From Macrostomum hystrix (lineage: Eukaryota > Animalia > Platyhelminthes), in NCBI GenBank assembly GCA_950097015.1, contig CATNEN010000037.1, positions 186,001-250,000 on the forward strand: 64,000 nt of DNA. Direction: 5' to 3'. Made by a program: the position numbers and the translations under genes. Below, piece after piece: positions 11,367-51,019 of the stretch; positions within the stretch are counted from its first letter, which is position 1; each line of letters begins with the position of its first letter. Under the pieces are notes generated by a model. The model had not been told where the DNA came from. It saw only the letters and a list, made by a program, of their open reading frames with translations, and made no database searches.

Positions 11367-11687
11367 GTTAATAATTTCTCATTTCATATATTTCTGTATT
11401 AGCAAGTGTTACGGCAGAGATAGCAAAGGTGAACGAGATCTTATAACAAATAAGCGAAAGTATGACTACGGTAACTGTTCAGTATCACAAAGTGGTAATC
11501 TGATTTAAATCTGGTTTAAACTGCCTGATTAGCTTCAATAGGCTACAGGTTTACAATGAGAAAAACAGAAATTTTGAAAGAAATTTGTCTGGGAATCGTG
11601 ATTAAAATCTTATGTGATTTAACACCGTCAGAATAATTCATGCAAGTCTACATTTTTATTAAAGAAAAATCAAATCAAAAGCTGTAT

Positions 11688-13047: not shown

Positions 13048-13111
13048 ACAATATCGACCTAGAAGTGCCTCGCTAATGCATCCAACCGACTCCAAAAGCT
13101 TCAGGGAAGAC

Positions 13112-19100: not shown

Positions 19101-22100
19101 GATATTGCGAAAAACACTGCGCGTTATTAAAATCCACCATAGCGGAAGAAGATCTTAATTGCTTCAAAGCCGCGTCTGTTTCATTTTGACAGACGACCTC
19201 CCCCTTCGGTCAGAAAAGTGAAACGCGACACTGACTTTGCCGCGCTCAAATCAAATCTAAAGAAGACATGCTAGCAAAAAAATTGATTATTTACAACGGA
19301 CAGAAGACGCGCAGATGCTGGGCGGAATCGGGTTTCCTCCACCTGGGTTTTCTTCATCAACGTGATGAAAAAACGCGGGTGCGTTTTTCCCTTTACCAAA
19401 GGCACCTGGTCATGTTTTGCTACGTGCGGCTGCTTCCTCACACAATGGCTCCTCCACTTTCTCACACTCTCTCACTCCAGCCTTTATGTAGATTGAGCAA
19501 GGCAGACTTGTGCATGAGTCAGTAGTCTAGCCCTGATTGAAACCTCCTTGAAGCAATTTGTGGGGAATTTTTTCAAGCATCGGACAACCGCTCTCCTCTG
19601 TCGCTGGTTGTGTTAAGAAGATTTCGGCGACATCAAAAGAGGGCGAAAACAGCTTCGCTGCGGTGCACTTTAAGGCCAGAGTGTCACCAATCAGCTAAGC
19701 TCAATGAACAAATTGAATATGAGCTCACCGAATACTCCAGATTGAGATGCTGTCTCCGCTCGTCGCTTGACGATGAGGAACGCAATCGATAGAATGAGAA
19801 TGAGCAGCACCAGAATGGCCAGTCCGGACACCAGCAGCAGCGCCGGCCCGGACACTTCAGAGGAGCCTCGACCAATGTCTCTGTGTCCGCCGCCTGGCTG
19901 CGATGGAGGATGCGGCCGCGCCGCCGCTGAAGTTGTTGAAGACGACGATGAAGAGTCGTTCTCAACGGCCACCTGCAGTAGGGTGTCGCGCTTTAGCTGC
20001 CGGTCGCGCCCGGCGTCGGAGGCCTCGATGCGCAGGACGAAAAGCCGGCCAGCGAAGGGCCGGAGATTGGCGCGAACCAGGAGGTTACCGGTCAGCGGCT
20101 CCAACTCGAAGTGCTCGCTGTCGTCTGGCGCCGAAGAGCCACCAGTAGCTGCGGACGTCGGTAGCAGCCGGTAGGTCACGTTGCCATTCTCGTCAGCGTC
20201 GTCGTCACGGGCGGCGATTCTCGCCACAAGGCTGCGTGGTGCCAGGGCGCTGCTGATGTTCACCTGGACACGTAGGGACAGTTTTAATTAACTATATCAA
20301 CTGTGCCTTGTGGGTCAGGCGACATGGGCATCTTGGCTGTTCCCCAGGTTAGGGGTATCTCTTGGACGTCTAAGAAGATTTTAGACTCGAGGTCAACTGG
20401 TTCGAGAACTAGGTGCAATGTAACATTACTGTCCCTAAGAAATTTCCTATCTAAGAAAATTGGGCCTGGTTTTGTATGTGAGCAGCTCAATTACTGATTC
20501 ATTTCTCTCTCATGTGGGTGGGGCAAGCTAACCTCTGTGTCCGTCTGTTATGGATTTTTGTTATACATAAAAATTCTCTAAGGGAAAGATTAAAATCTAT
20601 TTCTACGTTAACAATGCTGCTTTAGGGAAAAACGACGTAGAATTGATTCCTAAGCAATCCAGTGTACTGATAATTTACCCGATTGACCCTGCGCTCCGGA
20701 TCAGGGAAGATGAACCTTGGCGGCGTGTCGTTCACGTCGCCGACCTCGACGGTCAGGTAGAAGACGCTCGAGCGCGCCGGATGCACGCCGTCACTGACGC
20801 CGATGCGCAAGTGGTACTCCTTCTCCAGCTCGCGATCCAGAACGTCTCTGAGCGTCAGGCGGCCCAGCGAGTCGATCTGAAACTTGCTGGCGCCTCCGCC
20901 GATTCGGTTCCTCTGTCCGCCGACGCTCGTGCTGTCGTCGCTGGTCAGGATGAAGTTGAACTCTCGCCTGACGGGCTCGTCCGCGTCTGTAACATTCAGC
21001 GCAATGACCAGGGTACCGCGAGGCGCGTCCTCCTGCACCTGTATCCGGCGCGGAGTCGCCAAGTCAAACACCGGATTGTTATCGTTGACGTCAAGTATGG
21101 TCAAAACAACGGAGGCCGTGGCTGAGTAGTGCGGCTCGACTGTGTTATAGGCAACAACCTGGAAGGTGTAGCCCTCGCCCTCCTCTCGATCGAACACTCG
21201 ATTAGTCACCAGGCGGCCTGTGCTGGGGTAGATGCGGACATCCGTGAAGGTCGGTGGCTCGATTCTGTACTGAATGGCGTCGTTCGGTGGAGCATCTGCG
21301 TCCTCGGCCTGCAAGGAACCGATGGTCGTTCCCTCCGGCTGGTTCTCTTGGACGCTGAACGCGAATTCAGTGCGCCGCCACACCGGTGGAGAGTCGTTGG
21401 CGTCCTCGACCTCTACGCGAACGATTGCCTCGGTGCGCCGCGGAGGGCTGCCGTGGTCGCTGCACTCTAGCCGCACAATGTGCACAGCCTGTGTCTCGCG
21501 ATCAAAGGTGCGCACAGCATACAGGTGATAACTGGCTGCTCTACTGCTGCCCATTTGCTTCATGTATTGGAGCCCAAAAGATGCCTGCTGCTGTTGCTGC
21601 TGCTGCCGCTGCTGCGGCTCGTTGACCAGGCGGCATTCCACTCTGCCGTTGTCACCTGAGTCCTGGTCTGAGACTAGCACTGTGGCGATCACACGGGCAG
21701 TGTAGGCCACATTCTCTAGCACCCTCACAGACGATGTCTGGCTGCCGAATCCGATGACGCGCACTATTGGGCTATGATTGTTGACGTCAATCACCCTGAC
21801 CTGGTTTGCATGGTGAGTCTTTGTTGCTTCAGTATGCGCGGCAAAAAAATGAAATAATTTAATGTGCATGCGAACAGAAACTAACCTCGACTTCCATCTC
21901 GCTTGACCTGCGGGGCGATCCGTAGTCAAAGGCAGTAACCAGCAGTTCGTATGTGTTTTCCTCACCCCGCCTGTACAGTAGCCGGCCGTTGAGGGTCACA
22001 CGGCCAGAGAATTGGTCAATGCCGAACAGGCCGACTGGGTAGGGCCGACGTTGACCGGAACGCAGAGTGTATCCTACGCGGCCGTTCTGCCCAATGTCCC

Positions 22101-22992
22101 GGTCCACTGCCAGCACGGAAAACACAACTGAGTGCGGCCTGGCGTCCTCATCGAGACTTACGGTTAGACGTGAGCCATTGAGGAACTCCGGGCTGCAGTC
22201 GTTGACGTCATCGATGCTGACGTTGATGAAAGTGACGCCGACATTCCGGTCGCCATCCTCGGCCAGCAGCTGGAAGCCGTAGGAGGCGCGGCTCTCCCGA
22301 TCCAGCGGCTCTCGGTTGACCAGTTCGAGCGCGCGAACAGCGTCCGGGAAGGCGAGGCCGCCTCGATCATCTCTCACCTGGCGCAGCTCGAACTGCTCAG
22401 CGCCGCTGCCTAGCCGATAGGCCACCACACCGTTGCGTCCCCAGTCTGCGTCATGCGCAGTAGGCAGCGCTACGGAGACGCCCGCTCGGTCTGTCTCCTT
22501 GAAACGTACTTCGCTGCGACTGCGCTGAAACACTGGCTTGTTGTCGTTAAGATCAACCAGCTGGATGTTAAGCGTCAGTGCCAGGAAGCGCCTGTTTATT
22601 ACAGTGGTGGCCGCAGCGTCATACCTGAGGTCGCACACAGCTAATTGGTCCATCTGGCGCATGTCCTTCTCGCAGCAGAGGCCCCGACTGTCGCATAGGC
22701 TGTCCCGGTCGATGCGGCCGGCGGTAGTCAGAGTGCCATCTTCGGCCAGGCGAAACAGCGGCGCCACCGGGTCGTCAGGCAGGTAGGGACGCACGCTGAC
22801 ATTGGCCAGTTCCTCCGGATGCAGATCCCTGCGGAGCAGCTCCTTGAGGTTAGCCACAAAGTAGCCCGTCTCGCGCTCCTCCTGCAGCTGGCAGAAGCGT
22901 TCGACTGTCTGTGGAGAACTGCCGACCGCCTTAGCCAGGAGGGCTGCCATCAGTGCTGGCAGGCAGACTGATAGAAGACAGGCGAAGGCCAT
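16112..22992 (-). CDS. Protocadherin with signal peptide, 7 cadherin repeats, TM helix and cytoplasmic tail; exons 22992-21886, 21800-20679, 20263-19729, about 17726-17566, about 16582-16112; about 1130 aa
   Basis: Seven EC repeats with xE, DRE and DxNDxxP-type linkers (DLNDNKP, DVNDCSP, DVNNHSP, DANDSPP, DVNDNNP, DVNDTPP); TM LLLVSGLAILVLLILILSIAFLIV followed by KRR. First three exons have clean splice sites; acceptors of the last two are uncertain. Confidence 0.88.
16781..17358. mobile_element. Non-autonomous hAT (Charlie-like) MITE carrying an internal 16-bp purine minisatellite
   Basis: Perfect 16-bp TIR CAGGGGTCGGCAAACT (16781-16796) / AGTTTGCCGACCCCTG (17343-17358); 8-bp TSD GTTTAGAC at 16773-16780 and 17359-17366; subterminal GGCCCGCGGGCC motif. 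Confidence 0.92.
17762..18185. repeat. 29-bp minisatellite (CTCCATCTCGAACCCTAGACTGCACATCC)n in a protocadherin intron
   Basis: Period 29 (17763 to 17792). Confidence 0.9.
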
Positions 22993-29235: not shown

Positions 29236-29556
29236 AAATAAAATTGAAAAAACAAGTAAATTGTATTTTAAAACAATGAAAAGAGTAATATAAGACGCTT
29301 TTTAAAAAAAAAGCTTAAATAAGCGCAATGGTTACTACAAGTATTACTAATTGAATAGGATTGACATGAGAATTAATATCATAGCAACGGCACAAAAATA
29401 AATTTTGGCTAAGGATAAATAATTAATGTCTAAATTACTTTCTTATAAAAAATCGACAATAGAAACTTAAGTTTCAAACTGGGTCCTAAAAGCTATAAAA
29501 AATCAATGCATAACTTAGAAAAATAGAAAACGTGTTGATCTTGAGACTTTCCGGAG

Positions 29557-32500
29557 TCAGTGCTGAGACGTGATCTGCCACTTCAAAGCCTTGAGCGACC
29601 TTGCACAGGCCATTTCCTTCAGACAGGTCTGAAAAAAGCGAACTTCATATCTTTAGACATTTTACCAACCATGGCTGTTTTATGATAGCTAGTTACTATT
29701 TTCCCAGCATTAAACTCGAACAAGGAAAAAAATATTTTTGTGCCTTCGTCTTTATCTTATTTAACGAGTGATTGCATACACAGAAACCATTAGCAAAAGT
29801 CTTAATATTCTATTCAGCTTTGAAATGAAACTTCGAAAATAGTTTTAACGAACTAATAATAATAATAATTGCAGGAGGGCTGCGGGCAATGGCACATCAT
29901 TTGGCTGAAGGGTCGGTAGCAGAGCGGTTAACGCGTTTGCCTCTCGCCCCACGGTCCTTAAGTTCGATTCCGCGGCGAGGCCACATTCATTTGGGGCGCA
30001 GTCATTCGTGCAATTTACGCCCTTGAAGGCAAAGCTCCAAGGCACAGTGAAATGTACACTGCCTGACGATGAGAAAGTCAGGGCAGATGTACACACCCGT
30101 GCGAGCTTGTGCCTGCGTACAGTATCTGTGTGCGTGTGTGCTCAGGAGTCAGCGAAATGGGCAGAATTGCCTCCTCGCTGGCTGCGGGTCTAGTATTTCA
30201 ACGAACTGGAAGTTATTTGTGTTTTGTGACTAGTGACTCGGAATTCTCTCAGTCAGTCAATCGGGGTCTGACTCACCCGCTCCTTCACCAAGTCTTCCAG
30301 CTTCTGCTTCAACGCTACTTCGCTGTTGATCAATCGATGATGCGACTGAATTAGTCGAACGAGGCAGTCCGAATCGGTGGCATAGTACATCACCATGGCA
30401 ACCTCCTGCGAGTCGGCGTCTTCGTCCTGCACAATGGCATCAAAGTACGCCTCCGCACTTATTTCTCCTGGTAGAAACTCCAGGAGTAACGCCTTCATGA
30501 GGATGTCAAAGTTAGCCAGGTAATAGCTCATGTAGTTTCTTATTCGAATGGGAAAAATTTCTCTCAATTTCTCCGGAAGGAAGTCGAATTTGACGCCTTC
30601 AAAGAACTCTAAAAATCCAGGAATGTTGAAGTAAAACTTCCACGCCGAATCAGAGCCAGTCAGGTGTCGCCACACCAATTCCGGCGTTGCTTTATCCACC
30701 GTCAACTCGTGGGGCAGGTAAATGCCCCGGCTCACCGCATGGCCTTTGTAGTTGTGCAATACTGCAACCGCCTCATCCACACGGCCCAGTTTCAGAAGCC
30801 GCATCACTCTTAGGCCTTCTCGGGCGGTTTTGGCACAGTCTGGCAGCCTATTTAGGTCGGACTCAAATGACCGGAGGTCGCAGTCCTGTTCATCATCTTG
30901 CAGGTCAAGAAGCAGGACTCGCACCATGTCGTAGACTTCGTGGTACTCCAGCTCGCCAGCTGGGCTTACAGGCAGCAGTTGCCACAGGTCGGGAATGATG
31001 AGGAACGGGTGAAAGTAGAATGAGTTTGGGGATTTCAGTGGCTTCAGGGTTGCCCTGAACTGCTCAAATAGCTGGGGCAGTCGCTCCATGGTTTTTCTAA
31101 TCACTTCAGCCACTTCTTGCTTCTCATTTGAGCCTCCTTTCAGGTATACAATCGCGTCACGCAGGAAGAAGTGTCGCATGCACTCGCCTGTCTCTGAGCT
31201 GGCACTGAGCAGGCTGGCACGGAGTTTCTCGAAAGCTTTTATAGCCAAGTGCAGCAGGTTGCACGGCTGCCACTCACCCTGCGGCGTCTCTTCCAGCATG
31301 TAGAAGATGAGTGTCTTGGCGTGGTAGGTCTTCAGACCCGCGATCTTCTTGCCAATGACCTTCTTAATTATGAACTTGAGCGTCAGGAAGAGCTGACCCT
31401 GGACAGTCGTCAGGCTGCGCATCAAGCGGTTCTCCAAGAAGGTGGTGCTGAGCCTTAGGAAGCTTCCTTCCTGGCCTGGCGGAGCTGCGGTGGCCAGGTG
31501 ACACATGGAGCGCGCGGCTTCCAATTTCAACGCCAGCAGTACTTGGTCAGGTAGGCAAGTTGGGAAGCCTTCCTCCAGGATTTTAATTTCCGGGTAGCAA
31601 CAACAGCGGTATACGGTTACGTTGTCGATTGCAGGCCTGGCAAAGGATCCCAGTTCCGCCTTGGACGGGTTCGACGCTAAAAAGCAACGGAGATGCAAAA
31701 TGGAATCAGCTGAAAGCTATGAAAATGTATTTGGCATCAGACAGATCGAACGCACTGGCTCCGCTGAACTTCACGTGTCCGTTCTCGTAGTCGACAACGT
31801 CTTCGCCAGCTGCCTCTTCGCAGCGGCACAATCCTCGAATGTGAAGCAGGCGACCCGGATAGAATGACGTCACGTCAATGTCCGAGTCCGGGTCCGTCTT
31901 GCCGCTCAGCCGCACCAGACTGTTGCCCCAGCCCTCCGAGAAGCTGCCAACGATGAAAGTTGTCGACTCCTTGGATCTCTGTCTGATGATTTGCTGAAGT
32001 ACGTTGGCTGTGGCTCCTTGTACAGCAGAGCGAACTTCGTGAAATCCTGAGTCGACAAGACTATCGTGAAGCCGCAGGCTCACATTATCTGGCGCTAAGC
32101 TGCTTAAGTTGCGAAAATTGGCTTGATTTAATGTTTAATAATGAAAATATTGCAGGAGGGCTGCGGGCAATGGCACATCATTTGGTGACACTAGACCCGC
32201 AGCCAGCGAGGAGGCAATTCTGCCCATTTCGCTGACTCCTGAGCGCACACGCACACAGGTGCGTACATCTGCGCTGACTTTCTCATCTTCAGGCAGTGTA
32301 CCTGTGCCTTTGAGGGTACGGAAGGCCCACAAGCCTTCTCTCCGCGGCTGCGCCCCAAATGAATGCGGCCTCGCTGCGGAATCGAGCTCAGGGACCTTGA
32401 CGCGAGAGGCAAACGCTTTAGACCGCTCTGCCACTCACCCCGTGCTTAATTAGTTTACCTTAAAACAACTTAGCAACAGGACATTTTGTAGCTGAAAATG

Positions 32501-33925
32501 GAAGGCTTACCGCTCAGAGTTGATCGGTGGTAGGGTTTCAGAAGCCCGTGACTTCAAAAGCCGAATGCGCTCCACGATGGCGGGCAGGAAACTCGGGTCC
32601 GGTTTCAGTGCCAGAATTAGCGGCTCGTCGATGCTTGCGGCGGCCAAAGCCTCCAGAATCTCTCGAGCCTCCGCAAAATCGCCGTGAAAACACAAGGACT
32701 CAAGCAGGTCAATCTGCACCTTTAGATTATTGGACTCGCTCTCTGCTTCGGCTAAAATGTCCGCTACCTGTCTCTGGCCATTGTGCACTGCCAAGTCAAT
32801 GGCCGTTAGGCCCTCCTCGGATGCCAACAAAATATTAGCTCCAGCCCTGATCAACTCTGCGGCAACTTCAACGAATCCCTCCTGCGCTGCCACATGCAAG
32901 GCGGCGAAGCCTTGGTACTGCTGCTGATTGACATCGGCACCGGCGTCTGCCAGAATCTTGACAGTCTGGTGGAGGCCATTTTGGGCAGCAGCAAACAATG
33001 GCGACTCACCCGTCAGCTTTGGGAGGTTCACCTGTGCTTGAGCACTTAGCAGTGAGCGCACGACCTGGTTGTGCCCGTTCTGGGCCGCAATGTACAGCGG
33101 AGTGGAGCCGGTCTCGGAGGCCAGATCCACGTCGGCGCACGCGCCGATCAGAGCCTCCACCGCGCGCTGTTGGCCGTTCTCCGACGCGATATGCAGCGGC
33201 GACTCGCCGTTGAACATCTGCAGATCCACGTCAACCGTGCAAGTGTCAATTAGCAGCTTGACCACCTCCGAGTGGCCGTTCTGGGCGGCGATATAGATCG
33301 GTGAAGCTCCCTGCTGCTGCTGAGCGTTCGTGTCGGCGCCCGCTTCCGCTAGGGCCTTAGTCAGCTTCGCGTGGCCACTTTCTGCGGCTATGTAAATCGG
33401 CGACTCCGCGGTAATTTTAGGCAGGTCCGGGTTCGCCCCGGAGTTCAGCAGCAGGCAGGCCAGCCGGTTGTGGCCTTTCTCCACCGCGAGGTACAGCGGC
33501 GTTGCGCCAGACTCTTGGCGAGCGTCAACATTCGCCTGGGCTGCAATGAGGCTGCGGGCCACCTGGAAGTGGTTGTTAAGGACTGCAAGGTGCAGCGCCG
33601 AGTAGCCCTGGCTCTGCAGGGCATTCACGTCCGCCTGGAAGACTAGCAGCTCGTCCGTCACCGCCTTGCTGCCAGCATCCGCTGCCAGATGAAGCGGCGT
33701 CAAGTCGGAGCTGACAGTTGACAGGCTGGGATCCGCGCCAGCTAGGAGCAGGGCTGCCGCAAACTCAGCTCGGCCTAGGTTGGAGGCCAGGTGCAAGGCG
33801 CTGATTCCAGCATTGTTAATGGCATCGGCCCTGTGACCCTGACGCAGCAGCTGCTCGAGACCTGGCAGGTCTCCCCTCAGGACTGCGTTCATTAACTCCG
33901 CTGCCTGGTCAGCGGTGGAAGCCAT
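29557..33925 (-). CDS. Ankyrin-repeat / cGAS-like receptor (Mab-21 nucleotidyltransferase) fusion; exons 33925-32511, 32099-31756, 31676-30277, 29628-29557 (1076 aa), or exon 3 read through to the stop at 30253 (1060 aa)
   Basis: Exon 1 has 12 ANK repeats (TPLHLAA-type). Donor GAGCG|GTAAGC (phase 2) joins acceptor TAAGCAG|C in frame. GSFSEG..DSDID in exon 2; 79-bp intron GCCA|GTGCGT..TTTTTAG; IDNV third Asp, LRLSTTFLE, LKTYHAKT, HFF Mab-21 motifs in exon 3; donor CGG|GTGAGT and acceptor TTTTTTCAG give an in-frame exon 4. Domains are certain; the splicing is predicted. Confidence 0.8.
29855..30195 (+). mobile_element. tRNA-derived SINE copy 1 with 5' inversion (body on +, 3' end and (ATT)n tail on -), about 12-bp TSD
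   Basis: A box GGTAGCAGAGCGG and B box GTTCGATTCC at 29910-29965; TSD TTTTAACGAACT (29843-29854) / TTTCAACGAACT (30196-30207). Confidence 0.82.
32137..32441 (-). mobile_element. tRNA-derived SINE copy 2, collinear, in intron 1 of the ANK-cGLR gene
   Basis: A box TGGCAGAGCGG and B-box-like GCTCGATTCC on minus; body and 3' end homologous to copy 1, including a 55-bp identical block. Confidence 0.85.
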
Positions 33926-34619
33926 GTTTGTGATCGACAAATAGATTTTTCTCTTCTAGGCTCGGCGTTGCGTACCATGTGTTTTTGTAGAAGGCGAAAA
34001 TATATAGAAACCACATAGTACCCAAGTTCTCTTTTTTGAATAAACAATTAAAAGGACCGGATAGGGGATAGGGAGAGGAATGTACAAAGCAGAAATTTCT
34101 TGTACAGATCCACCAACCCCTTGACCGTACTGCTGTGAGTGCAAAGCTTTGTGCATGGCTTTCAATAGCTAGTAGCAGTAAAGGCGCAGTGCTGTACACA
34201 GCCGAGACAATCGACGCACAACCAACAGAAACGATAAGAGTATGAGCTGCTTGTCCAGCTACAATACAGGCTACAATACAGAACTGTACAGATGACTGCT
34301 TATACGAGAGGTAACGTTGACGCGGATGATTTTGACAATGAAAAGTTCTAGAGACACATTCTTAGGATTGTGTCTAACACTTACTGAATCAATATGAAGC
34401 TTATGAGCAGTTAGGAATGAGCTCATTTGAAGTATTCAGCCTTTGCATTATGATTAGGCTAGCTAGGGGCTCTTAAAATAAGTTAGGTTTCACCTCGTGA
34501 CCACTGACGAGGCTAAGGATGAAAGATTAGAGGACGACTTGAGCCGCAGCAACACCTGTTCATCAACGATCTAAGCCATCTCAGCTTTAGCTACGAGTCA
34601 AAAAGACAAACGCACTAAA

Positions 34620-35779: not shown

Positions 35780-36365
35780 CTAGAATGACTGTCCCAATCG
35801 CTAAACTGACTGTCAGGATCACTAAAGTATCTGTCACGATCTATAAACTGTCTGTCACGATCACTAAACTGTCTGTCACGATCAATAAATTGACTGTCAG
35901 GATCACTAAACTGTCTGTCGCGATCAATAAACGGACTGTCACGATCACTAGAATGACTGCCCCAATCGCTAAACTGACTGTCAGGATCACTAAACTGACT
36001 GTCAGGATCACTAAACTGACTGTCACGATCACTAAACTGTCTGTCAGGATTACTAAACTGTCTGTCACGATCAATAAACTGTCTGTCACGATCACTAAAC
36101 TGTCTGTCACGATCAATAAACTGACTGTCACGATCACTAAACTGACTGTCACGATCATTAAACTGACTGTCACGATCACTAAACTGTCTGTCACGATCAC
36201 TAAACTGACTGTCACAATCACTAAAATGACTGTCACAATCACTAAAATGACTGTTAGGATCACTAAAATGACTGTCACGATCACTAAACTGACTGTCACG
36301 ATCACTAAACTGTCTGTCACGATCACTAAACTGTCTGTCACGATCACTAAACTGACTGTCAGGAT
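35780..36365. repeat. 21-bp minisatellite (ACTAAACTGACTGTCACGATC)n downstream of the MORC stop
   Basis: Direct reading. Confidence 0.9.
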
Positions 36366-36571
36366 CGCTTTATCTAAACAAATACATTCCTTGGTATTCT
36401 AGTTTAAAAGCATCACTCCTAGGAGACGAAGAGAAGTTGTATATGGCACAGAAACAATGTCTTTAATCTCTGTTATACATGTATGTGGCCATTCCAAATC
36501 CCAAAAAAGAATGCCAGGATGGCCACTTAATGTTTTAAATTGCTACAACTCGAATATCCTAACAATGGGCG

Positions 36572-39500
36572 CTAAATTTCATCCTTAATCTCGACTTCGC
36601 TTTCGTTATCGCTGCGCTCAACCAGGTGCCAATTCTGCAGCACCGCCGCAACAGCGATATCAACGCGCCTATCTGGCGCAATGGGCAGCGAAGCGTCCCC
36701 TGGCAGCAGGCGCTGCAGTAGCTGCAGGACCGAGGCGCGCAGTTTAACCAACTCCTGACCGGCGGTAGCGTCCGCGGTGGCGTCGGCCTCTCTCGGCTGC
36801 CGCGGCTCCGACTTCACCTGACCTAGCTGCGGCGTAGCTACAACTTCGGGCGACTCGCCGACAGCGGAGCTGCAACGTCGATGGCTGGCGTCGGAACTCG
36901 AATGCCAGGACGATGAAGGCGGCGGCGGAGTCGATGACGTCGACGTCGACGATGTTGATGGCGTTGCGGCAGGCGGCAGCGGCAGCGGCGGCGGTGGCGC
37001 AGATTTGGCGTCGTAATCAACGTCGACTGCGGCAACTGGGACGGTTCTACGACGCTTGTATCGATTAACTGGGACAGCGACACGAGGTTCGTTTGTGAGG
37101 TTGGCAGCGATGGCGACTGGCATTCCGTTTGGCATTACAGATGCGATCGACGCCTCCCGTGCTTCTAGCAGCAGACGAGATACCTGGTGAGAATATTTTT
37201 TAGGATTATAATCTCGTAAAATTAAATACGAGCCATTTAGTGTGGGATTGTAATCTGTTGGGAATATTTAGTGTGGGATTACAATCTGTTGGGAATATTC
37301 AGTGTGGGATTACAATCTGTTGGGAATCTCGGTTGCCAAACCAGTGGGCCTTTTTCATGCAAGTATGGGCCAAACTGTGGGCCAATATTCCGGCCCATGG
37401 CGGCCCACACCTGCCGGCCCACGTATGCTGACCCACATATGAATGCCGGCGAATGTCTGCTGGAATCTTCGAATCCGCGCATGCCAAATTGCGTGGTCTC
37501 ATACACGGCTCTCGACCAACGGACACGGAAGTAGCTGGAGTGTTGCGGCGCCAACTGGCGCGGTGCGCTTTCATGACACAGCTTGGGTTGCAAAACCCTT
37601 TCACAGATAGGCCGCTGACTGGCGAAACCCGCCTACATGACGTTACGCGGTTGCAGAAGCCGAACCGTATTACAGCTGGCGCAGCACAGCAATACAGTAA
37701 GGCCATTCTACGAGCTAAAGCATGGAATTGAGTTGGAGATTTTCACGCCTAGCTTACGGAAACAGCGGTCTGCATCTTGTTTCGTAGCTTTTTTTGGAGG
37801 CAGAGGGCTCCTATCGCTGAGTTTGAATTCGCGCGCATCCAGACTATTAGAGCATCCGCGGACTCTGCAAGGGCGATTCTCCGTCTCAAGCGCCTGTCGA
37901 CAAGTAGCCCCAATGCAGAAGATCATCCGATGTTTCGGTTGACGCAGAATACAGCGCATGGCGGCTGCTCGGCGGCACACGTACGTCAGCTCCAAACAGA
38001 CCATTTTTGGCGACATTGCGCGGCTAAGGTGGCGGCCAAGTCCACAGCCAAGCAGCAGAAGGCCTGAGAAGCAGCGGCTAAGGTGGCGGCCAAGTCCACA
38101 GCCAAGCAGCAGAAGGCCTGAGAAGCAGCGGCTAAGGCGGCGGCCAAGTCCACAGAAAAGCAGCAGAAGGACTGAGAAGCAGCGGCTAAGGCGGCGGCCA
38201 AGTCCACAGCCAAGCAGCAGAAGGCCTGAGAAGCAGCGGCTAAGGTGGCGGCCAAGTCCACAGCCAAGCAGCAGAAGGCCTGAGAAGCAGCGGCTAAGGT
38301 GGCGGCCAAGTCCACAGCCAAGCAGCAGAAGGCCTGAGAAGCAGCGGCTAAGGCGGCGGCCAAGTCCACAGCCAAGCAGCAGAAGGCCTGAGAAGCAGCG
38401 GCTAAGGCGGCGGCCAAGTCCACAGCCAAGCAGCAGAAGGCCTGAGAAGCAGCGGCTAAGGCGGCGGCCAAGTCCACAGCCAAGCAGCAGAAGGCCTGAG
38501 AAGCAGCGGCTAAGGTGGCGGCCAAGTCCACAGAAAAGCAGCAGAAGGACTGAGAAGCAGCGGCTAAGGCGGCGGCCAAGTCCACAGCCAAGCAGCAGAA
38601 GGCCTGAGAAGCAGCGGCTAAGGTGGCGGCCAAGTCCACAGCCAAGCAGCAGAAAGCCTGAGAAGCAGCGGCTAAGGCGGCGGCCAAGTCCACAGCCAAG
38701 CAGCAGAAGGCCTGAGAAGCAGCGGCTAAGGTGGCGGCCAAGTCCACAGCCAAGCAGCAGAAGGCCTGAGAAGCAGCGGCTAAGGTGGCGGCCAAGTCCA
38801 CAGCCAAGCAGCAGAAGGCCTGAGAAGCAGCGGCTAAGGCGGCGGCCAAGTCCACAGCCAAGCAGCAGAAGGCCTGAGAAGCAGCGGCTAAGGCGGCGGC
38901 CAAGTCCACAGCCAAGCAGCAGAAGGCCTGAGAAGCAGCGGCTAAGGCGGCGGCCAAGTCCACAGCCAAGCAGCAGAAGGCCTGAGAAGCAGCGGCTAAG
39001 GTGGCGGCCAAGTCCACAGCCAAGCAGCAGAAGGACTGAGAAGCAGCGGCTAAGGCGGCGGCCAAGTCCACAGCCAAGCAGCAGAAGGCCTGAGAAGCAG
39101 CGGCTAAGGCGGCGGCCAAGTCCACAGCCAAGCAGCAGAAGGCCTGAGAAGCAGCGGCTAAGGCGGCGGCCAAGTCCACAGCCAAGCAGCAGAAGGCCTG
39201 AGAAGCAACGGCTAAGGTGGCGGCCAAGTCCACAGCCAAGCAGCAGAAGGCCTGAGAAGCAGCGGCTAAGGCGGCGGCAAAAATTTTCGACTTGGACGCA
39301 CCCAATAACTCCGGGTACACAGACTTGCGGAAGAGGTTAGCCACTGCCCTCGATGAGCCCGCTGCTGATGCCCACACCGATGGGCTGATATGTGTGGGCT
39401 GATATGGGCCGGCATATGTGGGCTGATATGGGCCGATATATGTGGGCTGATATGGGCCGATATGTGTGGGCTGATATGGGCCGGCATATGTGGGCTGATA

Positions 39501-42500
39501 TGGGCCGGCATATGTGGGCTGATATGGGCCGGCATATGTGGGCTGATATGGGCCGGCATATGTGGGCTGATATGGGCCGATATGTGTGGGCTGATATGGG
39601 CCGATATATGTGGGCTGATATGGGCCGATATGTGTGGGCTGATATGGGCCGATATATGTGGGCTGATATGGGCCGATATGTGTGGGCTGATATGGGCCGA
39701 TATATGTGGGCTGATATGGGCCGATATGGGCCGATATATGTGGGCTGATATGGGCCGATATATGTGGGCTGATATGGGCCGATATATGTGGGCCGGCATA
39801 TGTGGGCCGATATGGGCCGATATATGTGGGCTGATATGGGCCGATATGTGTGGGCTGATATGGGCCGATATGTGTGGGCTGATATGGGCCGGCATATGTG
39901 GGCTGATATGGGCCGATATATGTGGGCCGATATATGTGGGCTGATATGGGCCGATATGTGTGGGCTGATATGGGCCGATATATGTGGGCTGATATGGGCC
40001 GATATATGTGGGCTGATATGGGCCGATATATGTGGGCTGATATGGGCCGATATATGTGGGCTGATATGGGCCGATATGTGTGGGCTGATATGGGCTGATA
40101 TATGTGGGCTGATATGTGTGGGCTGATATGGGCCGATATATGTGGGCTGATATGGGCCGATATATGTGGGCTGAATGGGCCGATATATGTGGGCTGATAT
40201 GGGCCGATATATGTGGGCTGATATGGGCCGATATATGTGGGCCGATATATGTGGGCTGATATGGGCCGATATATGTGGGCTGATATGCGCCGGCATATGT
40301 GGGCTGATATGGGCCGGCATATGTGGGTCAGTCTGGGCCACTTTCTGCTTGGGTCAGCGTAGGTCAATGTGGGCTTTCTGCGGGCCGCTCAGAACCTAAA
40401 TTTGGCCCACTAGTGGGCCAAATAATGTGGGCCAGCCGACTTTTTTGGACAACCGGGAATATTTAGTGTGGGATTATAATATGTTGGGAATATTTAGTGT
40501 GGGATTATAATATGTTGGGAATATTTAGTGTGGGATTATAGTCTGATGGGAATATTTAGTGTGGGATTATAATCTGATGGGAATATTTAGTGTGGGATTA
40601 TAATCTGATGGGAATATCAAGTGTATGATTATAATCTGATGGGAATATTTAGTGTGGGATTATAATCTGATGGGAATATTTAGTGTGGGATTATAATCTG
40701 ATGGGAATATTTAGTGTGGGATTATAATCTGATGGGAATATTTAGTGTGGGATTATAATCTGATGGGAATATTTAGTGTGGGATTATAATCTGATGGGAA
40801 TATCAAGTGTATGATTATAATCTGATGGGAATATTTAGTGTGGGATTATAATCTGATGGGAATATTTAGTGTGGGATTATAATCTGATGGGAATATTTAG
40901 TGTGGGATTATAGTCTGATGGGAATATTTAGTGTGGGATTATAATCTGATGGGAATATTTAGTGTGGGATTATAATATGATGGGAATATTTAGTGTGGGA
41001 TTATAATATGTTGGGAATATTTAGTGTGGGATTATAATCTGATGGGAATATCAAGTGTGGGATTATAATCTGATGGGAATATTTAGTGTGGGATTATAAT
41101 CTGATGGGAATATTTAGTGTAGGATTTAGAATGCTATCATATTTACATTAGGGATATATTCATAGGGAAGAACCAATCGGAATCCCCAAATACCTCGCTA
41201 TCATCGTCTTCCTCCGGATCGTTGCAGCTATTGAAGAAGGCGTCTGTGCTCATGGCGCAGTGCCAGGTCCGCTTGTCCAGCTCGCGGCTCGCACCGCTGG
41301 CAGGCAGGCGGCGACACTTGCCACAGCGGCTGCACTCCAGCCAGCAGTAGACTGCAGCCTGGCCAGCGGAACCCGGCTCCGCTCTGCCGTTGAGGTCTAG
41401 GTACTCCCGCAGCTGGTGCGTCAGGCGGGCCATGCAGTTGCTGACCGGGCAGGAAGAAAACAGAATTCTTGCATTTCCCAGTGACGGTGGATACATCCAA
41501 AACGATTGCGCCCCCAAAAGCTACATGCTACATTCAAGTAGCATGTGAATGTAGGATCACTCAATATCCCAATGTAGGATCAATATCCTAAGGTAGGATC
41601 AATATCCTAAGGTAGGATCAATATCCCAATGTAGGATCAATATCCCAATGTAGGATCCAGATCCTAATGTTGGATCAAGATCCCAATGTATGATCAAGGA
41701 TTCGAGATCCCAATGTAGGATTAAGGATTCGATATCCAAATGTTGGATCAAAGATTCAAGATCCCAATGTATGATCAAGGATTTGAGATCCCAATGTAGG
41801 ATTAAGGATTCGAGATCCCAATGTAGGATCAAAGATTCGAGATCCCAATGTAGGATCAAAGATTCGAGATCCTAATGTAGGATCAAAGATTCGAGATCCC
41901 AATGTAGGATTAAAGATTCGAGATCCCAATGTAGGATCAAAGATTCGAGATCCCAATGTAGGATTAAAGTCTGTGGACTGGGGAGGCGGCTATTGCTGGT
42001 GTACTCATTTTACAGCTGGGTGAACTGAAGCACCAGGGAATTCAGTGTGTTTCTCAAAGAAACGAAATGCTTTCCTTGGACTGAGAATCGAACTCCCGAC
42101 CACTCAGTCAGAAGTCCGAAGCTCTAACCAATGGGCTAAAAGGTCAAGTAATATTGATTTTCAACGAAAATCCCCAATTCCAATAAAAATAGCAAGCTCA
42201 TCCGGGACGCAGACCGAAAATTCTGATTCCGCTCAAAGTCCTGCTTGACGTGATTTGGCTGCAGATGATCGACCTCGGCAACCAGGGCCACACCGCGCGC
42301 CTTATTGGGCTCCTTGACCAGCTTCTCGTAGGCCAGGATGAGTCGATTCCTGTGATAGAGCAGTGCGCCGTAATCAGCGTGACCCTGTGGCAGGAAGCCA
42401 ATCACCATGCGGCAGCGATAGTTGAGCCTGAGATCCATGCGCTCAAACTCTGCCTGACTGAGCTTAGGAGAATAGTACTGCAGGCATTGTCTGGTAAGAA

Positions 42501-44115
42501 CTCGCTGCATATGCTGCGACTGCACCGCCTGACCATCGATGCGAATGGCCATGCGGGGCCGCATGTACAGGATGCTCAGGTAAGACCGCAGCGACCGCCT
42601 GTACTCTGGTACCTGAGGCAGAGAGTTCATCTGTTTGATGGGAGAGGGGTGGCTTGGATGTAGATGCACGATGATTTGCTAACACAAAATTACCCAGAAA
42701 ATAATCTAAAAATGTTGAAATGATATGTGAGGGGTAGTAATTGCTGGCCCTACAAATGGTATGAGGGGTAGAAGTTGCTGGCCGTACAAATGGTATGTGA
42801 GGGGTAGAAGTTGCTGGCCCTACAAATGGTATGTGAGGGGTAGAAGTTGCTGGCCCTACAAATGGTGTGTGAGGGGTAGAAGTTGCTGGCCCTACAAATG
42901 GTGTGTGAGGGGTAGAAGTTGCTGGCCCTACAAATGGTGTGTGAATGTGAGGAGTTGAAGTTGCAGGTTTTTGAGGGTAAGCAGCAAAATCTGGCTAAAT
43001 AGACTCGCTAACCAGCATTCTCTGAGCGGGATTCAGTGCCTCCGCGGACACAGACTCCAGGCAGATGATGTCGCCCGGAACGCTGCGGAAGTCCAGCTCG
43101 AGGGCCGCGTCAGGCTGCTCGCTGCACCGCTTCAGATTGTAGATGATGATTCGAGTGCCCGTGACTGGAATGATGTCAAACTGGTCCATTAGAAGCTGCT
43201 GGCTGCCGCTGAACAATGGACAGTGATCACAGATGAGAGCCAGTGACTGATAGCCGTCGGGATCCGTGTCAATCATCGCGTCGTCCACCCAGGAGCAGAT
43301 TGGCAAAATTACTGTGTCGGCGCCAACATTGGCTAGAAATGTTTGCGAAAGAAATCCGACAGATTTGAGTAGGCGGCTTCCATCGGCTGACCAACACTTC
43401 GTGAGCACCAGCGCGTCCTTGCCTGGTGAGTTGGGTAAGTACATTTGTATCAGCATTGTGGTCGACGGAATATAACGAATAACGGCAATCGTCTACATGA
43501 CATGCCTAAAATTAGACGAGACATCCCATTGTTAGACAGAACGTCCTATTGTTAGACAGAACGTCCTATTGTTACACAGAACATCCTATTGTTAGACAGA
43601 ACGTCACATTTTTAGACAGGACATCTCCTTTTTAGGCAGGAGTTTCGTTAAGTAGACAAATGAAATCCCATAGTTCGAAGAACATGCCATTGTTGGACAT
43701 AACCATTGTTGGAAACTTCATACTGGACTCCCCAAATCTCCTTCTCACCAATCCGCATGGAGCCGGACTTGAAGCCGTTGCCATACTGGCCTACAGGCTT
43801 GTAGCCCCGCTCTGCCTGCTTGGAGCAGTAGCCAAAGCTCAGCATTTTATGCAGCTTATCGATTGGCATGCCTCTACCATCATCAGTGAAAGTCAAGTAG
43901 TCCAGCCCGTTAATATATTCATGCGCCATTTCCATACTGGCCGCCCGACAGTCGGGGTCATAGGCATTGTCAATAATCTCTGCGATGGCTGAGAATACCC
44001 AGGTGTGTGAAGTGGAGTTGGAATCTAAGTAGGCTGGACTGGTCTGGGCCAACCGCAAGCCATTGATTGAGTTGCTACTGGCAATTATACTGAGTTTGCT
44101 GCACTCTTCTGTCAT
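36572..44115 (-). CDS. MORC: MORC-family ATPase (GHKL + S5 + CW zinc finger, MORC3/4-like); exons 44115-43749, 43422-43013, 42612-42215, 41440-41194, 37183-36572; 677 aa
   Basis: AIAEIIDNAYD, DDGRGM, GQYGNGFKSGSMRIG, GTRIIIYNL, SLRSYLSILY, YHRNRLI, QPNHVKQDF; CW WLECSRCGKCRRL..WHCAMSTD..C; all splice phases are consistent. Confidence 0.9.
38022..39280. repeat. 54-bp GC-rich tandem array inside the CMC-like element
   Basis: Unit GCGGCTAAGGCGGCGGCCAAGTCCACAGCCAAGCAGCAGAAGGCCTGAGAAGCA. Confidence 0.92.
39383..40330. repeat. 24-bp subterminal array (GGGCTGATATGGGCCGATATATGT)n inside the CMC-like element
   Basis: Direct reading. Confidence 0.9.
41553..41968. repeat. 19/27-bp minisatellite (TGTAGGATCAAAGATTCGAGATCCCAA)n in MORC intron 3
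   Basis: Direct reading. Confidence 0.88.
41975..42138 (-). mobile_element. tRNA(Arg-like)-derived SINE fragment in MORC intron 3
   Basis: Minus strand TAGCCCATTGGTTAGAGC (A box), CTTCTGA loop, GGAGTTCGATTCTC (B box), followed by CACCCAGCTGTAAAATGAGTAC. Confidence 0.65.
42725..42945. repeat. 36-bp minisatellite (GTGAGGGGTAGAAGTTGCTGGCCCTACAAATGGT[A/G]T)n in MORC intron 2
   Basis: Direct reading. Confidence 0.9.
43520..43640. repeat. 20-bp minisatellite (CCTATTGTTAGACAGAACGT)n in MORC intron 1
   Basis: Direct reading. Confidence 0.85.
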
Positions 44116-48776: not shown

Positions 48777-51019
48777 TCAGAAGCTAAACTTTGTAGCTTC
48801 CTGACTATTGCCCGGATTGAAGGCGAGCTGCTGCGACGGCTCCGAGGTTGAGTCGGCGGCGACGACTGCGGCTGACGGCGCAGCGGCAGCTGCATCGTCA
48901 GCATCCGGATCGTCGGTGAAATACTTTTCGATGATGCCAAACGACAGGCGATAGATCTCCTCGTTGTCGTGCTCCTGAAGCTGTTCAATCTTGTCTAGGC
49001 CGCCGCACTCCTCGATCATCTCGCAGACTAGGCCGACGGCGCTCTCGGCAGCTTTTAGAATGTTAGACAGGCCGTCTAGAACCACCTGCACCACCTGGGT
49101 GTCCTTCACAGTGAGCATGTTGCACAGCGGAGGAATGACTCCCGCCTGTACAACACAGCCAATCTGCTGCCCATTGCCAGATATGGTGAGGTTGGACACA
49201 GCCCAGGCCGCCTCCTTCTGGGTCTGGAAGTCGCCCTTGTCCAGGTGGTGCACAATCAGCGGAATCAGGCCATGATCGATCACCGACTGTACTTGGGCCT
49301 GGCGATGGAGGCAGTACGTAGATTTGTAGAGTTTCATTCATCGACAGTTTTTGCATTTCCATTCGCACAACTTTTCATTTTTGTATGCTAGTACTGCATT
49401 GAGCGTTGTACTACTTCTCAGTCTTGTGATAATAAAAACTCAAGCCAGTATTGTACCAATCCTTGAGCCAGTCTTGTACCAATCCTTAAGCCAGCCTTGT
49501 ACCCACCCCAATCTCAATCTTGTACCAATATCCATTACATTCTTGTACCAATCTCCATTGCAGTCTTGTACCAATATCCATTACATTCTTGTACCAATCT
49601 CCATTGCAGTCTTGTACCAATCTCCATTACATTCTTGTACCAATCTCCATTGCAGTCTTGTACCAATCCCCATTACATTCTTGTACCAATATCCATTACA
49701 TTCTTGTACCAATCTCCATTACATTCTTGTACCAATATCCATTACATTCTTGTACCAATCTCCATTACATTCTTGTACCAATATCCATTACATTCTTGTA
49801 CCAATATCCATCAAATTTTTGTACCAATCTCCATTGCAGTCTTGTACCAATATCAATTCCAGTCCTGTAACAGTCCAACGCAAATCCAACCTACCTGATT
49901 TCCGGCCGTGATGTTAGACAAGAACCAAACGGCCTCCTTATTAATTTTCTCCTTGCTGTGAGTTAGCAGAGCCGGGAAGAAGCTTAAAGCGCCGTGATTG
50001 ATAACAGTCTGAGTCTGCTCATCCGTGCCAGTCACGATGTTGCCAACGGCTCGAAGGGCGGCAGTCTGCACCTTGACGTCAGTGTGCGACAGCAGTGGCA
50101 CCAGAAACGGCACAATGCCCTGATCAATAACCATCTGGATTTGATCGTTGCCACCGTCAGTTAGATAGGACAGGGCCCAGACTGTATCAACCAGGATATT
50201 GGTGTCCGGATGCTGGATGAGAAACAGCAGGGCTGGCAGCAGCTCCAGAATGGTGGCTACAGGTGGCGGCGGCTCCTTATTACGGCACAGGTTGACAATC
50301 ACCCAGGTGACGTTGCGCAGAAAGGTCACGGGAATGTCCGGACCGATAAAACGCAACAGCGGCTTGACAACACCCAACGAGATGACGTAATCGCGCAGAT
50401 GTGGCCCGTCACCGATGATGTTGCCGAGTGCCCAGACAGCCTGCTCGCAGACATTCTGATGCGGCGATGAGAGCAGGTGTAGAAAGTGCGGTATAGCGCC
50501 AGCTTTCACCACAGCGTTGGTCTGCTGGCTGGTGCCGGATGCGATGTTAGTCAGGGCCCAGGCAGCTTCGAATTGCAGATTGGGATTGTCTGAGCAGGAC
50601 AGGCACTCCACAAGGATGGGCAGGATGCCGGAATTGATTAGATCGTCAATTGGCGGATTGCGATCCGAGCTAAGCAGCTTCCTGGCGTTCTGGACAGCCT
50701 TCAGGCGAGTCGACTGGTTCGGACTGCGAGCGTCGGCGACAATGACACCAAGGCTGCCAACGGCTGGGGGTCGGTCGTTTTCATCCGAGTCGGTCATGCC
50801 AGAACCGGCAGATTCAATGCCACCAGCTGGCACGTTGCGCTTCTTGAGCAGATGCTCGTCGCGCTTGTTTTTGCGCAGTTCAACCTGATTGTCCTGTCGC
50901 CTGCGCCTCATTTCATCGGCATCTTTGCCGGCATTCTTGAACAGGTGCTGATGCCCGCCAGCATTGGCGGCACCCGAAGTTGACGAACTGTTAGCGCTGC
51001 TACCCTGAGGGTCTGACAT
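48777..51019 (-). CDS. KPNA3/4: Importin subunit alpha, alpha3 (KPNA3/4) subfamily; exons 51019-49895 and 49298-48777; 548 aa
   Basis: IBB domain [27 protein letters not shown]; ARM repeats [65 protein letters not shown]; CAS-binding C-terminus; phase-0 intron. Confidence 0.95.
49480..49860. repeat. 23-bp minisatellite (CTTGTACCAATCTCCATTACATT)n in the importin intron
   Basis: Direct reading. Confidence 0.9.

Follow-up and report, generated by a model that had tools for sequence, protein, structure and literature searches.

The window, that is, the whole stretch of 64,000 nucleotides of Macrostomum hystrix DNA that was analysed, carries on its minus strand, between 29350 and 33959, a four-exon gene in which an ankyrin array (ANK) precedes a predicted cGAS-like nucleotidyltransferase (NTase), in other words an ANK-cGLR fusion. 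Its features are listed below in the direction of the gene. The evidence for its expression consists of assembled contigs (Logan) of public sequencing runs aligned to the window, the runs being called here X1, X4, X5 and X6.

33926..33959, minus strand: 5' untranslated end; the X4 contig starts at 33959, and an upstream ATG is absent from this stretch
32511..33925, minus strand: exon 1, coding for residues 1-471 plus 2 nt (N-cap, 11 ankyrin repeats, linker)
32100..32510, minus strand: intron 1, 411 nt, GT..AG; joint 32099/32511 in X4, X5 and X6
31756..32099, minus strand: exon 2, coding for residues 473-586 (N-terminal spine helices; NTase core, first half)
31677..31755, minus strand: intron 2, 79 nt, GT..AG, interrupting the catalytic core; joint 31676/31756 in X4, X5 and X6
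30277..31676, minus strand: exon 3, residues 588-1053 (D604, Mab-21_C helical lobe, start of the C-terminal domain)
29629..30276, minus strand: intron 3, 648 nt, GT..AG; joint 29628/30277 in X4, X5, X6 and X1
29557..29628, minus strand: coding part of exon 4, the last 23 residues and the TGA stop, ending at 29557
29350..29556, minus strand: 3' untranslated region; contigs end at 29350 (X5), 29408 (X4) and 29430 (X6)

The reading frame starts with the ATG at 33925 of the minus strand. Exon 1 ends in the donor ...CTGAGCG/gtaagc at 32511, which is joined in phase 2 to the acceptor ...aagcag/CTTAGCG at 32099; exon 2 ends in ...GGAGCCA/gtgcgt at 31756 and is followed by ...ctttttag/CGTCGA at 31676; exon 3 ends in ...GAGCGG/gtgagt at 30277 and is followed by ...ttttttcag/ACCTGT at 29628. 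Joined together, the four exons make an open frame of 1,076 codons, which is interrupted unless the three introns are taken out. At 32511/32099, 31756/31676 and 30277/29628 the contigs of X4, X5 and X6 all display CT..AC skips, which are GT..AG introns when read on the minus strand, and a single X4 contig of 3,414 nt (29408-33959) contains the three joints at once. The three pieces listed separately in the track of open reading frames (ORFs) are one expressed four-exon gene, whose splicing, expression and order of domains are established. The original prediction had assembled the gene from these three ORF entries, and every coordinate which it gave holds: the in-frame phase 2 splice from 32511 to 32099 is present in three runs, the 79-bp intron linking the GS..DSDID half of the enzyme to the IDNV half is removed in the contigs of the same runs, and the three junctions which it had proposed to look for in transcripts were all found there. 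It had also remarked that the cGLR ORF has no in-frame ATG, and indeed the exon 2 peptide does not contain a single methionine, nor is there one anywhere in the NTase part ahead of its catalytic residues. This means that the enzyme half can be made only as a fusion.

One could object that ANK and cGLR are two neighbouring genes, brought together by read-through transcription or by a chimera in contig assembly, as Logan contigs carry no information on direction or on transcription starts and X4-X6 have no recorded library type (we read their contigs as cDNA because the GT..AG introns are removed from them). We hold this to be very improbable, given that the 32511/32099 junction is identical and in frame in three runs, that the NTase exon offers no methionine to initiate from, that the proteins of the family in Macrostomum lignano have the same architecture in a single chain, and that Ank_2 domains are recorded on M. 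lignano cGLRs in Table S2 of Li et al. 2023 (bioRxiv 10.1101/2023.02.22.529553). The gene model gives exact exons, start and stop for an ANK-cGLR which ORF-based annotation splits threefold.

The ankyrin array extends over about 32726-33919. On exon 1 the Pfam profiles Ank_2 and Ank match at 2.7e-64 and 1.9e-63, and the array contains 11 clear repeats in a 33-34-aa register; with its N-terminal cap it amounts to about 12, which is the number announced beforehand. In the profile comparison suggested at the same time, exon 1 matches Ank (E about 1e-64) and exon 3 matches Mab-21_C. Taken two by two, the repeats are 32% identical on average and 52% at most. Between the array and the NTase lies a helical linker of about 70 aa (residues 401-472), which is not conserved between the window protein and its M. 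lignano relatives.

The remainder of the protein, residues 472-1076, is colinear with M. lignano proteins across both exon junctions at about 40-50% identity, and the full-length relatives in that species (1,109-1,218 aa) have the same order of ANK and Mab-21_C. Among these ANK + Mab-21 proteins are PAA61028.1 (P0015, 1,146 aa), PAA45980.1 (P0046 region), PAA86972.1 and PAA68676.1; what they have in common with the window protein is an ANK array, then an NTase with the motifs VGS.SEGWGN, SDIDV and RPA.D.V, then a helical lobe with YH.KT, and then a C-terminal domain reading FHPFL...RLPDCA...DSAWKF...NFDAL. The importin-alpha which the window also encodes shares 89% identity with its M. lignano counterpart, as befits a Macrostomum-like flatworm host; compared with this value, the 40-50% identity tells us that the window gene is a diverged paralogue, or an orthologue in another species. 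The window protein itself does not occur in protein libraries of 5.8-billion and 1.84-billion entries. When identity to the paralogues is taken domain by domain (NTase 43-46%, C-terminal domain 31-40%, ANK 35-44%), no module stands out as fast-evolving. With its colinear ANK, NTase and C-terminal domain, the window gene is one of the many ANK-cGLR paralogues that arose by expansion in macrostomids.

The residues which concern catalysis are the following.

31943-31948, minus strand: G523-S524, GS loop, in exon 2
31880-31882, minus strand: D545, catalytic position, in exon 2
31874-31876, minus strand: D547, catalytic position, in exon 2
31624-31626, minus strand: D604, third catalytic Asp, in exon 3

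Pfam recognises the helical lobe: PF20266 (Mab-21_C) matches exon 3 with 27.2 bits, the cut-off being 24.1 (E 4.3e-6), the lobe having YH.KT at 704-708 and ending at about residue 805 (31021). The Mab-21 NTase family of Pfam, PF03281, finds no match in the N-lobe, neither in the window protein nor in its relatives from M. lignano, exon 2 has no Pfam match at all, and a phmmer search with the exon 2 peptide against the sequences of the PDB returned only noise. With a profile of the family, the helical lobe alone was aligned to PDB sequences (matches to the C-lobe of cGAS), and the motifs of the N-lobe were therefore tied to cGAS in two steps, by way of Mab-21 proteins. In hhalign the family matches Mab-21 proteins bearing PF03281/PF20266 at 99.9% (E=4e-32, 301 columns); the profile of such Mab-21 proteins reaches 9e-37 with cGLR1 and about 1e-22 with cGAS, and pairs GS with GS, SDxD with NEFD and D.V.A with SVDIILA. 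G523-S524, D545, D547 and D604 share their columns with GS, D73, D75 and D172, which are invariant in the Mab-21 set, and in cGAS with GS, E-F-D and SVD, so that their place in the right alignment columns is established. Across the family these columns hold G in 42/43 sequences, S in 41/43, and the three Asp in 42/43, 39/43 and 38/44; of the more than 40 diverged Macrostomum paralogues, about 90% thus retain the GS loop and the carboxylates. On the strength of this alignment, the GS loop and the acidic triad appear intact at the catalytic positions of cGAS, and the GS, DSDID and IDNV motifs which had been singled out as such do fall in the Mab-21/cGAS catalytic columns.

The structure model used here is that of PAA61028.1, residues 545-1146, a colinear paralogue 43% identical to the window protein and not the window protein itself. 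The AF2 model of its NTase and C-terminal region has a pLDDT of 94. Its best 50 Foldseek matches in the PDB are all cGAS or Cv-cGLR1, and in VIA-align about 270 residues can be aligned at Z 19-20 (14-348 of the model against 162-521 of cGAS), a match which covers the whole catalytic domain of cGAS. The cGAS-type fold being established on this paralogue, the window NTase is predicted to have the same bilobal fold, with a pol-beta-like core and a helical lobe. Colinear proteins, profile alignment and the fold of a homologue, including the comparison with cGAS that had been recommended, agree on an ANK + cGAS-like architecture; the earlier interpretation of the gene model, of the architecture, of the flatworm origin and of the triad is supported. 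Cv-cGLR1 (PDB 8GJW/8GJY) and vertebrate cGAS have the bilobal NTase fold in common with the flatworm family (Z 18.8-19.8 for the paralogue model), and their GS loop and acidic triad align with those of the family, whereas sequence identity is about 15-18% and the flatworm protein adds the ANK array and the C-terminal domain. In addition, the flatworm N-lobe has a conserved H558/C563/C565/H580 cluster (exon 2) instead of the zinc thumb of cGAS.

The C-terminal domain begins at residue 806 (31020), downstream of the Mab-21 lobe; it is helical and about 270 aa long. A model made from the window's own exon 3 part of it has a pLDDT of 90, and no search with it gave a convincing relative: Foldseek against the PDB found nothing significant (best E 0.76), a wide VIA-align search reached at best Z 6.9, under the noise guide, with generic TPR-like helical proteins, the shape search of the ESM Atlas gave TM 0.44 or less, and its language-model features gave scores under 0.9, all of them TPR-like leads. 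As the scores were too low in all structure and profile searches, we rejected the idea of naming the domain after these leads. The original prediction had mentioned about 250 aa of unrecognised sequence after the Mab-21 domain; we find about 270, and profile and fold searches are negative. Outside flatworms the nearest sequence relatives of the NTase are bivalve-type Mab-21 proteins (hhalign 99.9%), which are about 700 aa long and whose tails contain TPRs. Their GS..EG and SD.D motifs resemble those of the flatworm family and they too have a helical C-terminal extension, but an ANK array is absent from them, and their tails have no detectable homology with the flatworm domain (hhalign 0.8%, AFDB TM 0.42-0.46). 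A conserved C-terminal domain without structural relative and the His/Cys cluster of the N-lobe are concrete features for testing.

We consider it probable, with good confidence, that the locus encodes an expressed four-exon ANK-cGLR of a macrostomid expansion, predicted to synthesise a nucleotide messenger under the control of a ligand or partner. The product would be a cytosolic protein of 1,076 aa made of an ankyrin solenoid with about 12 repeats, the short helical linker, a cGLR NTase and a lineage-specific helical C-terminal domain. It would rest inactive until a ligand or partner binds, the most plausible site of binding being the ankyrin array, the C-terminal domain or both; NTPs would then be turned into a nucleotide second messenger by the GS loop and the metal site D545/D547/D604, and a downstream receptor would read it. 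That the enzyme is active and that ANK acts as sensor or regulator, as had been suggested from the start, is likewise what we infer. An ANK-fused cGLR is also known from Stylophora pistillata (Li et al. 2023, Fig. 4C), where the ankyrin repeats of the coral proteins, attached to a cGLR core as in the window, are read as a protein- or ligand-interaction module (bioRxiv 10.1101/2023.02.22.529553); the likeness is one of domain description, in another phylum, and the flatworm family adds its C-terminal domain of about 270 aa.

The in vitro screen of Li et al. 2023 bears on catalysis. Its 140 proteins included NTase-side constructs of five M. lignano members, and poly I:C and dsDNA were supplied (bioRxiv 10.1101/2023.02.22.529553). 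The 'Note' column is empty for these five clones, which therefore are outside the 15 named active enzymes; enzymatic activity has been reported for no member of the macrostomid ANK-cGLR clade. This would suit a pseudoenzyme or scaffold, as proposed for MAB21L1/2, which uses the Mab-21 fold and binds partners via ANK without any nucleotide signal; an N-lobe too divergent for PF03281 would suit it too, and MAB21L1/2 do have the superfamily fold in common with the flatworm family (5eog match of the Mab-21 profile). Yet the window protein has the GS loop and all the catalytic carboxylates, and the family conserves them: 38-42 of 43-44 sequences per column keep them, which is unexpected without catalytic constraint, whereas a predicted functional active site is absent from Mab21L1/2/3 (Li et al. 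2023). Moreover, many cGLRs seem inactive in vitro because their ligand is missing (Li et al. 2023). A pseudoenzyme is in our opinion unlikely.

Another possibility is that the enzyme is active and senses its ligand at the NTase surface, as cGAS and Cv-cGLR1 do nucleic acid, ANK being an adaptor, a localisation module or an autoinhibitory module. Enzymes that sense DNA or RNA are the best matches in structure, and the NTase domain taken alone has a pI of 8.3, while that of the ANK array is 4.7 and that of the complete protein 5.3; a pI above 8.5 goes with nucleic-acid-sensing cGLRs (Li et al. 2023), a threshold which 8.3 nevertheless does not reach. The five NTase-side constructs, moreover, stayed outside the named actives despite poly I:C and dsDNA, and the ANK fusion is kept across the paralogue family. 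Sensing at the NTase surface is thus possible, though it is not what we expect. Gating through ANK and/or the C-terminal domain, which we prefer, may also be taken further: the macrostomid ANK-cGLRs could form a germline-encoded, diversified receptor repertoire in which the ANK solenoid and the C-terminal domain recognise the ligand and a non-canonical receptor reads the messenger. We regard such a repertoire as doubtful; if true, it would be a new logic of cGLR activation, in a phylum mostly described without cGLR signalling.

Flatworms are indeed mostly reported to be without cGLRs. A literature search found no statement on STING in Macrostomum; in Table S5 of Li et al. 2023, the Platyhelminthes rows consulted, which are cestodes, give 0 cGLR and 0 STING, and M. 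lignano is not in the table (bioRxiv 10.1101/2023.02.22.529553). ANK-cGLR fusions, M. lignano members included, are catalogued in Tables S2 and S3 of the same work. The architecture which had been called little studied is so, but it had already been described in these domain tables; the advance is incremental, as gene family and fusion type are already published. Repeat-array-fused cGLRs are catalogued but functionally untouched as regards ligands, products and the roles of the appended domains. The family in free-living Macrostomum is expanded, expressed and conserved at its catalytic residues, and offers a practical way into the question of what ANK-cGLRs do. Macrostomum is a model genus, amenable to transgenesis and RNAi.

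Finally, two introns of the gene contain copies of an abundant interspersed repeat. A tRNA search of these copies was negative and an Rfam search gave no family match, so that a tRNA-derived SINE identity is unsupported. One copy lies in intron 1 (about 32150-32450) and the second in intron 3 (about 29870-30230), inverted with respect to the first.

The minus strand was read over 34300-29400 and the exons of the original prediction were joined by script, which gives the following gene.

Exons of the gene, all on the minus strand (a slash marks the splice site)
33925-32511, minus strand, exon 1: ATG at 33925; donor GAGCG/gtaagc
32099-31756, minus strand, exon 2: acceptor aagcag/CTTAGCG; donor GAGCCA/gtgcgt
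31676-30277, minus strand, exon 3: acceptor ctttttag/CGTCGA; donor GAGCGG/gtgagt
29628-29557, minus strand, exon 4: acceptor ttttttcag/ACCTGT; the TGA stop ends at 29557

The frame of 1,076 codons is open only with all three introns spliced out; they measure 411, 79 and 648 nt. In a run search, four public sequencing runs contain about 0.75 of the words sampled from 29500-34000, which is the exonic share of that region. We aligned three of them (X4, X5 and X6) to the window, and each of the three predicted junctions is present in each run.

Joints in the contigs of X4, X5 and X6, each with CT..AC ends when read on the plus strand and GT..AG in the sense of the gene
32099/32511, minus strand: 411 nt skipped
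31676/31756, minus strand: 79 nt skipped
29628/30277, minus strand: 648 nt skipped

Record 8 of X4 is a single contig of 3,414 nt which covers 29408-33959 with all three introns removed, and exon depth is uniform, at about 11-13. As the introns are removed, we take X4-X6 to be cDNA (the run records give no library type). The continuous frame and the contig junctions show that three entries of a mechanical ORF list are, as had been proposed, one spliced, expressed fusion gene. A read-through artefact is one of the rival explanations, an unlikely one. The translation of the whole of exon 2 holds no methionine, in agreement with the claim that the cGLR (cGAS-like receptor) reading frame lacks a start of its own, and the first methionine of the enzyme part comes only downstream of the catalytic residues; hence the nucleotidyltransferase (NTase) can be made only as the C-terminal part of the ankyrin protein. 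Within the assembled contig, whose 5' end is at 33959, there is no ATG upstream of 33925.

In another run, X1, labelled as a different organism (organism A), the exon 3/exon 4 junction is found at 100% identity in a contig of 228 nt (window 29552-30427); the source of this run may be the same or a near-identical species filed under another name.

The Pfam profiles fall where the original prediction placed them. Exon 1 consists of ankyrin repeats (Ank_2, 2.7e-64; Ank, 1.9e-63): 11 of them in a 33-34-aa register over residues 36-400, while a cap-like helix pair before them brings the total to about 12, the number predicted. They are ordinary, diverged repeats (mean pairwise identity 32%, maximum 52%), and they are followed by a helical linker, residues 401-472, unconserved among relatives. 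Exon 3 passes the Mab-21_C (PF20266) cut-off of 24.1 with 27.2 bits, and exon 2 has no Pfam match.

The window's own protein is absent from both protein libraries searched, and its relatives were found with the exon-3 peptide, which matches Macrostomum lignano proteins at 37-53% identity. Of the 160 cluster representatives returned by an exhaustive HMMER search, 80 have E<1e-10; many matches are M. lignano "hypothetical" proteins of 1,100-1,200 aa, matched in their C-terminal half, with an ankyrin array and then Mab-21_C as in the window protein. By BLAST, the spliced residues 472-1076 are colinear with M. lignano proteins across both exon junctions (about 40-45% identity over some 570 residues). 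The splice model gains from this a line of support that does not depend on the cDNA.

Sequence searches against the PDB matched the helical lobe only (cGAS and cGLR1, E 1e-3 to 5e-5), and we therefore took three further routes: conservation, profiles and fold. In the flatworm family alignments A1/A2, the motifs VGS.SEGWGN, SDIDV and RPA.D.V are conserved, and the catalytic columns hold G in 42/43, S in 41/43 and D in 42/43, 39/43 and 38/44 sequences; the window protein has G523, S524, D545, D547 and D604 there. A profile A3 was made from the weaker matches of the exon-3 HMMER search, canonical Mab-21 proteins with both PF03281 and PF20266. It aligns with the flatworm family by hhalign (99.9%, E=4e-32, 301 columns), GS pairing with GS, SDID with the invariant D73/D75 of A3 and RPAvD.V.A with its invariant D172. 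The same profile matches cGLR1 (8gjy, 9e-37) and cGAS (about 1e-22), where GS falls on GS, SD.D on N-E-F-D and D.V.A on S-V-D-I-I-L-A, the catalytic positions of cGAS (E225/D227/D319 in the human enzyme). Family alignment and profile pairing thus show the catalytic residues in place and conserved family-wide, and the three acidic positions (D545, D547, D604) appear as intact as predicted.

The fold was modelled on residues 545-1146 (NTase and C-terminal region) of the M. lignano paralogue P0015 (PAA61028.1), the closest full-length relative at 43% identity, rather than on the window protein. In this AlphaFold2 model (pLDDT 94, pTM 0.93), the best 50 PDB matches by Foldseek are all cGAS or Cv-cGLR1; by VIA-align, model residues 14-348 align on cGAS 162-521 with Z 19-20 over about 270 residues. 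GS follows strand 54-57, D80/D82 start strand 80-94 and D138 lies inside strand 136-145, the expected pol-beta-type topology. The paralogue model shows a cGAS-type fold.

The stretch separating the DxD strand from the third-Asp strand has a cluster H558/C563/C565/H580 (window 31775-31843) that is conserved family-wide (H 40/45, C 34/42, C 41/42, H 37/42). The four residues are a candidate metal-binding site, and they lie elsewhere than the cGAS zinc thumb.

The unrecognised sequence said to follow the Mab-21 domain corresponds to residues about 806-1076, which are conserved family-wide (FHPFL, EYHE.YD, RLPDCA..ARE, DSAWKF, NFDAL). Modelled directly (pLDDT 90), residues 800-1053 of the window protein are mainly helical with a small sheet. 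Foldseek gave nothing significant in the PDB (best E 0.76), a wide VIA-align search only generic TPR-like helical proteins (Z <=6.9), and the ESM Atlas no match. In AlphaFold DB, significant matches are confined to the flatworm family, with marginal ones to tails of bivalve Mab-21 proteins (TM 0.42-0.46); a profile-profile comparison with these tails came out negative (0.8%). The region is best regarded as a helical domain specific to this lineage.

A survey of about 3,000 cGLRs (Li et al. 2023, bioRxiv 10.1101/2023.02.22.529553 / PMC9980059) reports cGLRs fused to ankyrin repeats or TPRs among its minority architectures (Fig. 1C, S2A) and shows, in a coral, cGLRs with ankyrin repeats and with death domains. 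Its Table S2 lists Ank_2 on M. lignano PAA68676.1, PAA86972.1, PAA45980.1 and PAA68216.1, and Table S3, for a screen of 140 proteins, includes clones of five M. lignano proteins (numbers 89-93) that begin at the NTase part. These five share motifs with the window protein, and number 90 is P0046, the region of PAA45980.1 in our family alignment. A literature search turned up nothing more recent on cGLRs of flatworms. The architecture, originally called little-studied, is thus functionally uncharacterised, but it is already catalogued, M. lignano members included. For the rival reading as a pseudoenzyme, the "Note" column naming selected active enzymes is blank for numbers 89-93; against it, the catalytic residues are in place, and the authors caution that many cGLRs seem inactive in vitro for want of an identified ligand (Li et al. 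2023, PMC9980059).

The earlier observation is confirmed, and its interpretation is supported: the protein would be a cGLR-type sensor making a nucleotide messenger upon triggering, in which ligand or partner recognition, or autoinhibition, may be the task of the ankyrin array, the C-terminal domain or both. Alternatively, the ligand would be sensed by the NTase surface. The pI of the NTase domain alone is 8.3 (ankyrin array 4.7, whole protein 5.3); compared with the >8.5 used as a rule of thumb for nucleic-acid sensing (Li et al. 2023, PMC9980059), this value speaks neither for nor against such sensing. Macrostomum is a tractable model genus for questions about the trigger, product, receptor and two appended domains of such a protein.

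The host was placed with another gene.

48777-51019, minus strand: importin-alpha gene, at least two large exons (query ORF 49856-51019)

This ORF is 89% identical to its M. lignano counterpart and at most 78% to anything else, and the host is therefore a Macrostomum-like flatworm, a congener-level relative other than M. lignano. NCBI attributes a 347-aa partial protein (P0002) to a "Kangiellaceae bacterium" MAG; it shares 50% identity with the flatworm protein of the window, and the JGI metagenome proteins P0001 and P0003 resemble it. P0002 probably stems from flatworm DNA that ended up in a bacterial MAG during binning.

Other features of the window
32150-32450 (intron 1) and 29870-30230 (intron 3), opposite orientations: interspersed repeat copies, about 300-350 nt each
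19691-22992, minus strand: three large ORFs, cadherin-repeat-like (DxNDNxP), with a transmembrane tail, by eye
42995-44115, minus strand: ORFs with GHKL-ATPase-like motifs IDNAYD, DDGRGM and GQYGNGFKSG, by eye
11640-13076, 35785-36402, 37958-40367 and 58384-63971: long coding-looking minisatellite arrays

The two intronic copies share a 69-nt core, 99% complementary, and lie inverted on either side of exons 2-3. They have no tRNA or Rfam match, and word depth in the RNA contigs reaches thousands over them versus about 12 on exons. Inverted in this way, they could give rise to intramolecular dsRNA or promote back-splicing. The ORFs at 19691-22992 look like a protocadherin-type gene and those at 42995-44115 are reminiscent of MORC proteins. 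One minisatellite array carries a 1,500-aa ORF whose N-terminal part consists of tandem units of about 19 aa, VMQLRDSPVPTEEHPSSAE; open frames on both strands are typical of tandem repeats.
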